64,000 bases of DNA from Macrostomum lignano (taxonomy: Eukaryota): positions 186,001-250,000 of the forward strand of contig NIVC01000990.1 of assembly GCA_002269645.1 (NCBI GenBank), given 5' to 3'. A model generated the notes under the pieces. It was given only the letters and a program-made list of their open reading frames with translations, did not search any database and was not told the origin of the DNA. Below, in pieces: positions 27,441 to 30,900 of the stretch (position 1 is the first letter of the stretch; each line of letters starts with the position of its first letter). Both the position numbers and the translations under genes were made by a program.

Positions 27441-27914
27441 GAGAGTCATCCAGTGAATCTCACTCAACCCCAGAGAGAGTCATCCAGTGAATCTCACTCA
27501 ACCCCAGAGAGAGTCATCCAGTGAATCTCACTCAACCCCAGAGAGAGTCATCCAGTGAATCTCACTCAACCCCAGAGAGAGTCATCCAGTGAATCTCACT
27601 CAACCATTGAGAATGAAGCAGTGAATCTCACTCAACCATTGAGAATGAAGCAGTGAATCTCACTCAACCATTGAGAATGAAGCAGTGAATCTCACTCAAC
27701 CATTGAGAATGAAGCAGTGAATCTCACTCAACCATTGAGAGAATCACCCAGTGAATCTCACTCAACCATTGAGAATGAAGCAGTGAATCTCACTCAACCA
27801 TTGAGAGAATCATCCAGTGAATCTCACTCAATCACTGAGAATCAAGCAGTGAATCTCACCCAATCCCTGAGAATCAAGCAGTGAATCTCACCCAATCCCT
27901 GAGAATCAAGCAGT
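27441..27914. repeat. 34/32-bp minisatellite (CAGTGAATCTCACTCAACC core)
   Basis: Tandem array ending about 30 nt before the first ACK acceptor. Confidence 0.92.
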
Positions 27915-27942
27915 GAAGCATATTTATCGCATCTTCCGGCAG

Positions 27943-30900
27943 GCAACGGCGGCCAGTCCAACCGGTGACACCGCCGCGGCGGCTGTCCCAAACTCTTCGC
28001 CGTCGTCTGTACGACAGCGTCGCTCTCCGCAGCACCGCAGTTCTCAACAGCGTCCCGCCTCGGCCGTTGTTTCTGCGACAAGTCGACACGGCGAGCCAGA
28101 CGACGAAGCCTGGCTTGCGCGGCTCTTGGCTGAAGTGGATTTGACCGCTTTTCATCGGCGCATTCGCGAAGATCTGCAGGTTGGCTGACTGACTGACTGA
28201 CTGACTGACTGACTGACTGACTGACTGACTGACTGACTGACTGACTGACTGACTGACTGACTGACTGACTGACTGACTGACTGACTGACTGACTGACTGA
28301 CTGACTGACTGACTGACTGACTGACTGACTGACTGACTGACTGACTGACTGACTGACTGACTGACTGACTGACTGACTGACTGACTGACTGACTGACTGA
28401 CTGACTGACTCACTGACTGACTGACTGGCTGACTGACTGACTGACTGACTGACTGACTGGCTGACTGGCTGACTGACTGACTGACTGACTGACTGACTGA
28501 CTGGCTGACTGACTGACTGACTGACTGACTGACTGACTGACTGACTGGCTGACTGACTGACTGACTGACTGACTGACTGACTGGCTGATTGACTGACTGA
28601 CTGACTGACTGGCTGACTGGCTGACTGACTGACTGACTGACTGACTGACAACCGCCGTCGCCCTCCAGGTGACAAAGCTTCGCCATTTTGACTTCGTCAA
28701 GTCGGACGATCTCGAACGTCTGGGCCTGTCGCGTCCATCGGCGCGCCGACTGCTTGACGCTGTGAAGCGATGGCGCCACGCGGCCAAGAAGAAGAAACAG
28801 CAACAGCAGCAGGGCCTGATCGATCGGTTGCGACTAAGCAGCAAAGCGCTGCCCTCTCAGCCGGCGGCTGCCGCCCCCGCCGCAGCTGTTGAAGCTCCGG
28901 CTAATCTGGAGCTCCTGCTGCCGTCCGCTGCCGCCGTGTCCGCGTCCGCGCCAGCTGGAGGGGCCGCTGGTGGCGCTGCTGGCTTGGCGCCAATGGCGCC
29001 AGCGCTCAGCTCGGGAGAGCAGGTGAGAAACTGCTTCTGAAGGTCCGCCTAGGGCACGTACGTTGAATTTCGTTCTCAATGATTTTTAGGAATCGCCTCA
29101 AGACACATTGAGAATCGCCCCGAGACACATTGAGAATCACCTCGAGACACATTGAGAGTCGCCCCGAGACACATTGAGAATCACCTCGAGACACATTGAG
29201 AATCGCCTCGCGACACATTTAAAAAACGCCCCAAGACATATAGAATCACCTCAAGACACATTGAGAATCACCTCAAGACACATGGAGAATCATTTCAAGA
29301 CACATTGAGAATCACCTCAAGACACATTGAGAATCACCTCGGACACATTGAGAATCACCTCGAGACACATTGAGAATCGCCCCGAGACACATTGAGAATC
29401 ACCTCGAGACACATTGAGAATCGCCCCGAGACACATAGAGAATGGCCTCGAGACAGATTGGGAATCGCCACAAGACACATTGAGAATCTCCCAAAGACAC
29501 ATTGAAAAAAAGCACCAAAAGCCCCGAACTCCTCTCCCGCCAGTTGATGTGCCTCATCAGCTCCAAGAGCGTGTACACCTACTCGAAGCTCGGCTCCGGC
29601 CAATTCGCTGACGTGATGAAAGGCGACTGGGTTACCCCGTCTGGCGCCAAACTGCCGGTGGCCGTGAAAATTTTACGCGACCCAAAAAGCGGCGCCAACA
29701 CGGCTCTGGAAGACTTCGTCAAAGAGGTGAACAGCATGCACTCGCTGAGTCACCCCAACCTCATCCGCCTGTACGGAGCCTGTCTGTCATCGCCGCTCAT
29801 GATTGTCACCGAGCTGGCTCCGCTCGGCTGCCTGCTCAACCGGCTGAGGGATGAAGGATCGGCCGGATTCTCCCTGATTGAGCTGTGCAACTATGCTGAC
29901 CAGGTTCGATCTCCCCTGCTGATTGCTGGCTGACTCCGCCTCCTGTTCATCCCCTGAGCCCCCTGTTCATCCCCTGAGCTCCCTGTTCATCCCCTGAGCC
30001 CCCTGTTCATCCCCTGAGCCCCCTGTTCATCCCCTGAGCCCCCTGTTCATCCCCTGAGCCCCCTGTTCATCCCCTGAGCCCCTGTTCATCCTCCTCTTCA
30101 TCCCCTTTCCGCCCCCTGTTCATCCTCTCCGCCCCTGTTCATCCTCTTTCCGCCCCTCTGTTCATCCTCTCTCCGCCCCTGTTCATCCTCTTTCCGCCCC
30201 CCTGTTTATCCTCTCTCCGCCCCTGTTCATCCTCTTTCCGCCCCTCTGTTCATCCTCTCTCCGCCCCCTGTTTATCCTCTTTCCGCCCCCTGTTCATCCT
30301 CTCTCCGCCCCCTGTTTATCCTCTTTCCGCCCCCTGTTCATCCCCTAAGCCCCATGTTCATCCCTGAGCCTCCTGTTCATCCCCTTTCCGCCCCCCTGTT
30401 CATCCTCCTCTTCATCCTCTTTCTGCCCCCTGTTCATCCTCTTTCCGCCCCCCTGTTTATCCTCTCTCCGCCCCTGTTCATCCTCTCTCCGCCCCCTGTT
30501 CATTCTCTCTCCGCCCCCTGTTCATCCTCTCTCCGCCCCTCTGTTGATCCTCTTTCCACCCCCTGTTCATCCTTTCTTCATCCCCTGAGCCTCCTGATTC
30601 GCTCAAATTAAATTCAACCATCGCTAAGCCAACCAATCAAAACGCAGGTGGTGAGCGGCATGGCTTATTTGGAGTCGCGCCGTTGCGTGCACCGCGACCT
30701 GGCCTGCCGCAACCTGTTGTTGGCGTCGCGAGCCCTAGTGAAAATCGGCGACTTCGGCCTTATGCGCCTGCTACCGGCCAATCACGAGTGCTACACAATG
30801 GGCAAACAGAGCACCGTGCCCTTCGCCTGGTGCGCTCCGGAGAGCCTTCGCCATCTGCGCTTCAGCCACGCGTCTGACGTTTTTATGCTTGGCGTCACTC

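Follow-up and report, generated by a model that had tools for sequence, protein, structure and literature searches.

A putative spliced-leader start codon for the ACK kinase gene of the flatworm Macrostomum lignano

The stretch of DNA analysed here, hereafter the window (64,000 nucleotides (nt) of Macrostomum lignano; contig NIVC01000990.1 of assembly GCA_002269645.1, positions 186,001 to 250,000 of the forward strand), contains a gene for an ACK/TNK2 tyrosine kinase whose first exon has no ATG. The start codon is probably provided in trans: a spliced leader (SL) would be joined to the transcript at window position 27943, and the AUG at the end of the leader would act as the initiator of a kinase of 884 amino acids (aa). 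The mechanism itself is already known, from Schistosoma in 2006, and has been noted for Macrostomum; ACK is a new instance of it. The locus was read over window positions 25800-29400, with the sequence statements re-checked by script, and was compared with two other copies, L001 (NIVC01002847.1) and L002 (NIVC01000765.1). The ING gene upstream of ACK and ACK exons 1-5 are 100% identical between the window and L001, and L002 has about 98% identity to the window in exons and about 96% in unique spacer.

The ACK model consists of seven exons, with GT..AG at all junctions, and encodes 883 aa without the leader methionine. The proposed acceptor and the exons are listed below, a slash marking the splice junction here and throughout.

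27918-27940, + strand: unique sequence with a pyrimidine-rich tract, between a tandem array and the acceptor
27941-27942, + strand: AG of the proposed trans-splice acceptor (cttccggcAG/GCA); the homologous AG of L002 directly precedes the annotated start of the coding sequence (CDS)
27943-28179, + strand: ACK exon 1, 237 nt, phase 0 at both ends; a 57-aa extension and the first 22 residues of the SAM_TNK domain
28669-29022, + strand: ACK exon 2; remainder of the SAM domain and a low-complexity linker
29544-29903, + strand: ACK exon 3; kinase N-lobe
30648-31016, + strand: ACK exon 4; kinase catalytic core
33459-33637, + strand: ACK exon 5; end of the kinase domain and start of SH3
36611-36912, + strand: ACK exon 6; SH3 and the CRIB/GTPase-binding region
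37710-38560, + strand: ACK exon 7; C-terminal region, stop codon included

Pfam assigns residues 58-113 of the model, which straddle exons 1 and 2, to SAM_TNK (PF22931, E=3.9e-20), residues 210-465 to the tyrosine kinase domain (PF07714, E=7.4e-82), residues 483-520 to SH3 (PF00018) and residues 532-585 to GTPase_binding (PF09027, E=2.8e-23). This is the domain order of ACK1/TNK2 in other animals. No Pfam match at E<0.01 was obtained for a C-terminal UBA domain; to the eye alone, the final ~50 residues resemble one. Over the SAM and kinase regions, the closest relative among the matches listed is the ACK of Capitella (54% identity), and identity to mollusc, arthropod and vertebrate ACKs is 47-52%. 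No flatworm ACK is among the matches listed for the SAM and kinase query, all of which are proteins of at most 653 aa; the word-indexed search may under-report long relatives, a full-length M. lignano ACK included. The length of a complete ACK is about 1,000 aa. Exact look-up of seven N-terminal variants of the 883-aa model, and of the ING and stomatin proteins encoded elsewhere in the window, found none of them in the protein collection. Intron 1 is almost entirely a (CTGA)116 repeat (28185-28649), and intron 5 holds an interstitial telomere-like (TAGGGT)11 repeat (35610-35676).

Exon 1 contains zero ATG on the + strand, with 2.2 predicted from base composition, and thus offers no genomic in-frame AUG ahead of the SAM domain. 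Upstream of the acceptor, the frame is closed by a TGA at 27868-27870 (+), with no ATG between this stop and 27943. Downstream, the first in-frame ATG (28993-28995, +) corresponds to residue 188, past the end of the SAM_TNK match at residue 113, and opens an open reading frame (ORF) of 696 aa with the whole kinase. The initial annotation had described the ATG-less exon, the upstream stop and the late in-frame ATG, and the script check bore out all three. On a leaderless mRNA, the first ATG (28770-28772, +) lies in another frame and heads an ORF of 40 aa. ACK1/TNK2 homologues, in contrast, have their own Met 7-14 residues ahead of SAM, whereas the M. lignano gene has no Met in its first 187 codons and carries ahead of SAM a low-complexity extension of 57 residues rich in Ser, Pro, Ala and Arg. 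The full-length ACK kinase is not predictable from the genome alone.

The comparison with L002 shows that the SAM domain is translated. Exon 1 differs between the two copies by five substitutions, four synonymous ones at third positions and one non-synonymous (E51G), and its first 104 nt show 0 differences, with about 4 expected at the spacer rate of 3.8% (P about 0.02). In the SAM domain (residues 58-113), which aligns with ACKs from other phyla, there are four synonymous and no non-synonymous changes, and because 4/4 are synonymous the domain must be translated. It is under purifying selection at the protein level, which calls for an initiator upstream of it. This bears on a different explanation, in which the leader AUG is unused and translation starts either at the internal AUG 28993, giving a SAM-less kinase, or at a near-cognate codon (ACG 27946), giving a full-length product with a non-AUG start. 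The ORF opened at 28993 does cover the whole kinase, ACG is codon 2 of exon 1, and non-AUG initiation on trans-spliced mRNAs has been documented in nematodes (PMC9851317). Such a start is nevertheless very unlikely: a SAM-less product does not agree with a conserved SAM domain that has only synonymous changes between copies, the out-of-frame AUG 28770 precedes 28993, and ACG 27946, the sole near-cognate codon ahead of SAM, would lie on a trans-spliced mRNA 3 nt past a perfect AUG.

The strongest indication of where the mature transcript begins comes from the GenBank annotation of the paralogous copy L002. Its ACK product is 876 aa long, contains SAM_TNK, Pkinase, SH3 and GTPase_binding, and has a coding range that starts at L002 position 14278. 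This position is the first base past ...catcttctcgcag/GCAACGGCG (...tcgcag/), the exact homologue of window position 27943, and as the CDS begins at the acceptor without an ATG, it is annotated as 5'-partial. In the Mlig_3_7 annotation, leaders were trimmed, leader-bearing reads were mapped, transcription units were cut at trans-splice peaks and ORFs were called by TransDecoder (PMC5730564). The start of the L002 CDS matches what a leader-trimmed, trans-spliced transcript gives in this pipeline. A cis-spliced upstream exon would have extended the annotated ORF, or would have forced an internal ATG start with a product of about 690 aa, not 876. Furthermore, only 0.5% of the positions in the region come after a YAG with a pyrimidine-rich tract and, by contrast with ACK, two 5'-partial ING CDSs of Mlig_3_7 do not start after AG; the rarity of such acceptors and these ING starts argue against coincidence. 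At the level of annotation, this points indirectly to a mature mRNA that begins at a 3' splice acceptor without a cis donor partner.

The M. lignano leader is 35 nt long (CGGTCTCTTACTGCGAAGACTCAATTTATTGCATG) and ends in ATG; the SL RNA gene continues with the donor GTAAG (PMC8629364). Between 30 and 39% of M. lignano genes are trans-spliced (PMC8629364, PMC5730564), and the enriched acceptor motif is [T/C]TNCAG (PMC8629364). Thus the worry, raised in the initial annotation, that the organism might lack SL trans-splicing does not apply. All reported flatworm leaders end in AUG. In Schistosoma mansoni, as related in PMC9851317 from Cheng 2006, 28% of the trans-spliced mRNAs carry the leader AUG in frame, and more than 40 cDNAs depend on it. 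The use of the flatworm leader AUG as an initiator is established, as far as the work is reported in PMC9851317 and PMC12582326 (Cheng, Cohen, Ndegwa and Davis 2006, J Biol Chem 281:733), so that the earlier appeal to Schistosoma as a precedent was correct, and for Macrostomum the final ATG of the leader has been described as a likely site of translation initiation (PMC10468722). The leader sequence was not found in the window, which therefore contains no SL RNA gene.

The acceptor sequence in the window reads ...TATTTATCGCATCTTCCGGCAG/GCAACG. The tract ahead of it differs from that of L002 at two positions, and both differences raise the pyrimidine content in L002. The GC content is 0.47 over the 100 nt that precede the acceptor and rises to 0.68 over the 100 nt that follow. 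An exon start at 28096 was also considered, as its product (M-PDDEAWL) would resemble the N-termini of the homologues, and was rejected because the AG is lost in L002.

Upstream of ACK, on the same strand, lies an ING-family gene, and the features of this gene and of the spacer behind it are the following.

25398-26435, + strand: single-exon ING-family PHD-finger gene, called ING3 in the initial annotation
26412-26413, + strand: GT of an in-frame phase-0 donor within the ING gene (GGG/GTGAAA), 7 codons before the stop; used in UniProt entry A0A1I8F1D0
26480-26485, + strand: AATAAA polyadenylation signal of the ING gene
27278-27304, + strand: mini-exon ATG.../GTAAAG (MFLTLSELK), absent from the annotation; in frame with 27943, and the sole upstream mini-exon with a near-consensus donor
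27435-27917, + strand: 32-nt tandem array of about 15 copies in the presumed outron; 1.5 kb long in L002

The ING protein of the window is 100% identical to the NCBI protein P0241 (GCA_002269645.1, NIVC01002847.1), which clusters with PAA77088.1 (BOX15_Mlig016269g3, Macrostomum lignano), and this match identifies the window as M. lignano. A different Macrostomum, considered because the stomatin of the window showed 79-88% identity in a comparison with M. lignano as the nearest species, was rejected on the strength of the complete ING match. A full-text literature search found no mention of Mlig016269, and the supplementary tables of two M. lignano papers have no TNK2, ING3 or Mlig016269 entry. 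A second tandem array occupies 26532-26761 of the spacer, and the L002 arrays lie at 11167-12049 and 12710-14239. From the ING stop to 27943, the spacer measures 1,508 nt in the window, 713 nt of it in tandem arrays, and 3,210 nt in L002, with 2,413 nt in arrays. Both arrays differ 3- to 4-fold in length between the copies, and the unique part is constant at about 0.8 kb. In M. lignano, an operon class has been defined as gene pairs with a repeat-adjusted spacing of <1 kb (PMC8629364). ING and ACK lie on the same strand at a repeat-adjusted distance of about 0.8 kb in both copies, under the 1-kb threshold. By this published distance rule they would count as an operon pair, and their co-transcription is a prediction from spacing. 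The suffix of Mlig016269g3 was considered as a mark of the third gene of an operon and rejected, since transcripts that resemble one another are grouped under a common name prefix (PMC5730564).

The following sequence of events is proposed. ACK would be transcribed downstream of ING with an outron made of the ~0.8 kb of unique AT-rich spacer and the two tandem arrays, and the upstream spacer, being an outron, would not need to be a promoter region with a start codon of its own. The spliceosome would join the 35-nt leader to the acceptor AG at 27941-27942, creating the junction TTATTGCATG/GCAACGGCGG (also TTATTGCATG/GCAACGGCGGCCAGTCC), and would thereby set the terminal AUG of the leader directly before GCA ACG GCG. 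Leader plus exon 1 translates in frame and no stop occurs before 38560, and because the leader AUG lands in frame at this place, translation would start on it and yield M-ATAASP... followed by SAM, tyrosine kinase, SH3, CRIB and the C-terminal region, 884 aa in all. Reads bearing the leader would accordingly be expected to join at 27943, and ribosomes to initiate on the leader AUG. The initial annotation had proposed this same junction, N-terminus and full kinase; the L002 CDS start and the frame open to 38560 support the proposal and make it likely to be right.

That a 237-nt exon contains no ATG is in itself just a mild departure from expectation, with a chance of about e^-2.2. Several observations weigh against the proposal. 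Codon usage in 27943-28092 favors none of the frames and is uninformative for the N-terminal extension. The acceptor CGGCAG agrees with the [T/C]TNCAG motif in its last four bases (NCAG) only. The L002 CDS has no ATG at its start, and its first residue was inferred from the start coordinate. No leader-containing read or cDNA was seen at 27943, and a transcript-derived M. lignano ACK is absent from the protein collection. In L001, where the exons are otherwise identical, the acceptor is changed by an A to T substitution at 27941 (CAG/ to CTG/; L001 position 12533), one of just two substitutions in 7,741 nt of unique sequence between the window and L001 (window 22100-35600). Either a genuine variant of the splice site or a mistake in the assembly may underlie the change from AG to TG. 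The claim of the initial annotation that an acceptor opens at 27943 in phase 0 was confirmed for the acceptor and the phase, and does not extend to the L001 copy, which lacks the AG. Divergence from L001 is mosaic along the window, with 69 substitutions in 2.7 kb (window 19300-22052) followed by near-identity over the next 13 kb (22100-35600; L001 3886-20626), a pattern suggestive of gene conversion, of recombination between the copies or of a chimera in the assembly.

A further difficulty is that ten other in-phase AG sites lie at 27784-28096, and at six (27904, 27919, 28018, 28033, 28051 and 28096) the frame is open, so that the junction is not fixed by the window sequence alone. Trans-splicing could accordingly use another of these sites (28018, 28033 or 28051, or 27904 or 27919 upstream), with a shorter or longer extension as the result. 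These sites are all in phase 0 with an open frame, the uninformative codon usage gives no frame signal that would set 27943-28092 apart, and the homologues begin just 7-14 residues ahead of their SAM domains. Moreover, in L001, which lacks the AG at 27943, a shifted junction would still work, because the closest AG upstream (exon start 27919) lies in phase with an open frame. The use of another AG is still quite unlikely, given that the annotated L002 CDS begins at the homologue of 27943, that the jump in GC content is located at this very position, and that the first 104 nt of exon 1 are free of differences from L002.

The remaining evidence against a leader-borne start concerns a cis-spliced upstream exon that would bring its own AUG. 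This exon could be the ING gene itself, read through from a donor at 26411/GT to give a fusion, the 27-nt mini-exon, or a distant 5' exon with ING nested in the first intron. The cis junctions predicted are AAGTCGGCCGGG/GCAACGGCGG for the ING donor and CTGAACTGAAA/GCAACGGCGG for the mini-exon. In favor of the first route is the UniProt entry A0A1I8F1D0 (P0242, from an older annotation), in which ING ...CPRCKSAG runs in frame into ATAASPTGD... at the same acceptor, with the exon end at 26411. The ING donor GGG/GTGAAA is not weaker than several genuine ACK donors and is present in all three copies, and acceptors shared by cis- and trans-splicing have been reported in parasitic flatworms (PMC12582326). 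An ING-ACK cis route is mechanistically possible. However, A0A1I8F1D0 is a poor model, being 5'-partial, without kinase exons 3-4 and with frame-shifted stretches, and the need for an ATG would lead a gene predictor to just such a fusion. In the RNA-seq-based Mlig_3_7 annotation, ING keeps its own stop and polyadenylation signal, and the ACK CDS runs from the acceptor with no upstream exon. The chimera is therefore probably a mis-annotation that stems from the ATG-less first exon of ACK.

As for the mini-exon at 27278-27304, its ATG, open frame and GTAAAG donor are kept in L002 with one substitution, which counts for the cis route; this retention is uninformative, however, as the spacer is 96% identical between the copies. 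In the 1.5 kb past the ING stop there are 11 ATGs and four ATG.../GT mini-exons that could be joined to 27943 in frame, 0/4 of which have a GT[AG]AG donor. The earlier statement that this interval holds no convincing upstream coding exon was borne out; the in-frame ING donor at 26411/GT had been missed. Taken together, a cis-spliced start is improbable. It is similarly doubtful that one acceptor serves two start routes, the leader AUG for ACK and, in addition, ING read-through for an ING-ACK fusion. Under such an arrangement, the AG-to-TG variant at 27941 would remove or shift the start, and kinase dosage or the N-terminus would differ between near-identical copies of a polyploid genome.

The proposed start on the leader AUG has its closest parallel in the S. 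mansoni mRNAs whose ORF begins in the leader (slORF). In both cases the leader ends in AUG, a phase-0 acceptor lies directly ahead of the coding sequence, and no other in-frame AUG precedes the conserved domain, so that the N-terminus requires the leader AUG. The cases differ in that M. lignano is a free-living macrostomorph whereas Schistosoma is a trematode, in that the M. lignano ACK is known from genome and annotation and the Schistosoma mRNAs from cDNA and translation assays, and in the unusual 57-aa low-complexity extension that ACK carries ahead of SAM. The trans-splicing and operon studies of M. lignano (Wudarski 2017, PMC5730564; Ustyantsev and Berezikov 2021, PMC8629364) concern the same organism and leader, with 5' ends at an AG acceptor and a spacing of <1 kb as here; the ACK gene is not described in them, nor was the number of leader-AUG-dependent genes measured there.

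The lack of an ATG in ACK explains both the 5'-partial GenBank entry and the chimeric ING-kinase protein of UniProt. A leader-aware annotation, in which the leader ATG is added back, is needed for Macrostomum and for other flatworms (the annotations of M. cliftonense and M. hystrix have retained the leader ATG), and the correct N-terminus of ACK matters for knock-downs, antibodies and transgenes in M. lignano. The case leaves the knowledge of trans-splicing unchanged, and its main use lies in the correction of annotation.

Other features of the window lie on both sides of this locus. A Ty3/gypsy-type long terminal repeat retrotransposon lies at 625-5404. Its gag ORF encodes a CCHC zinc knuckle, its pol ORF (protease, reverse transcriptase, RNase H and integrase) is open, and its terminal segments are repeated near 625-897 and 5111-5404. 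Between ACK and the next gene lies a 14.3-kb satellite (40152-54457) with a 20-nt unit, CCCCAACCCAGGAGAATCGC, in about 728 copies, with an 89% match and a strong strand skew. It is followed by three genes with their own ATG, all on the + strand: an NTM1-type N-terminal proline methyltransferase gene of two exons (54508-56284), a phytochelatin synthase-like gene (57966-58385) and a single-exon stomatin/Band_7 gene (60088-61275).

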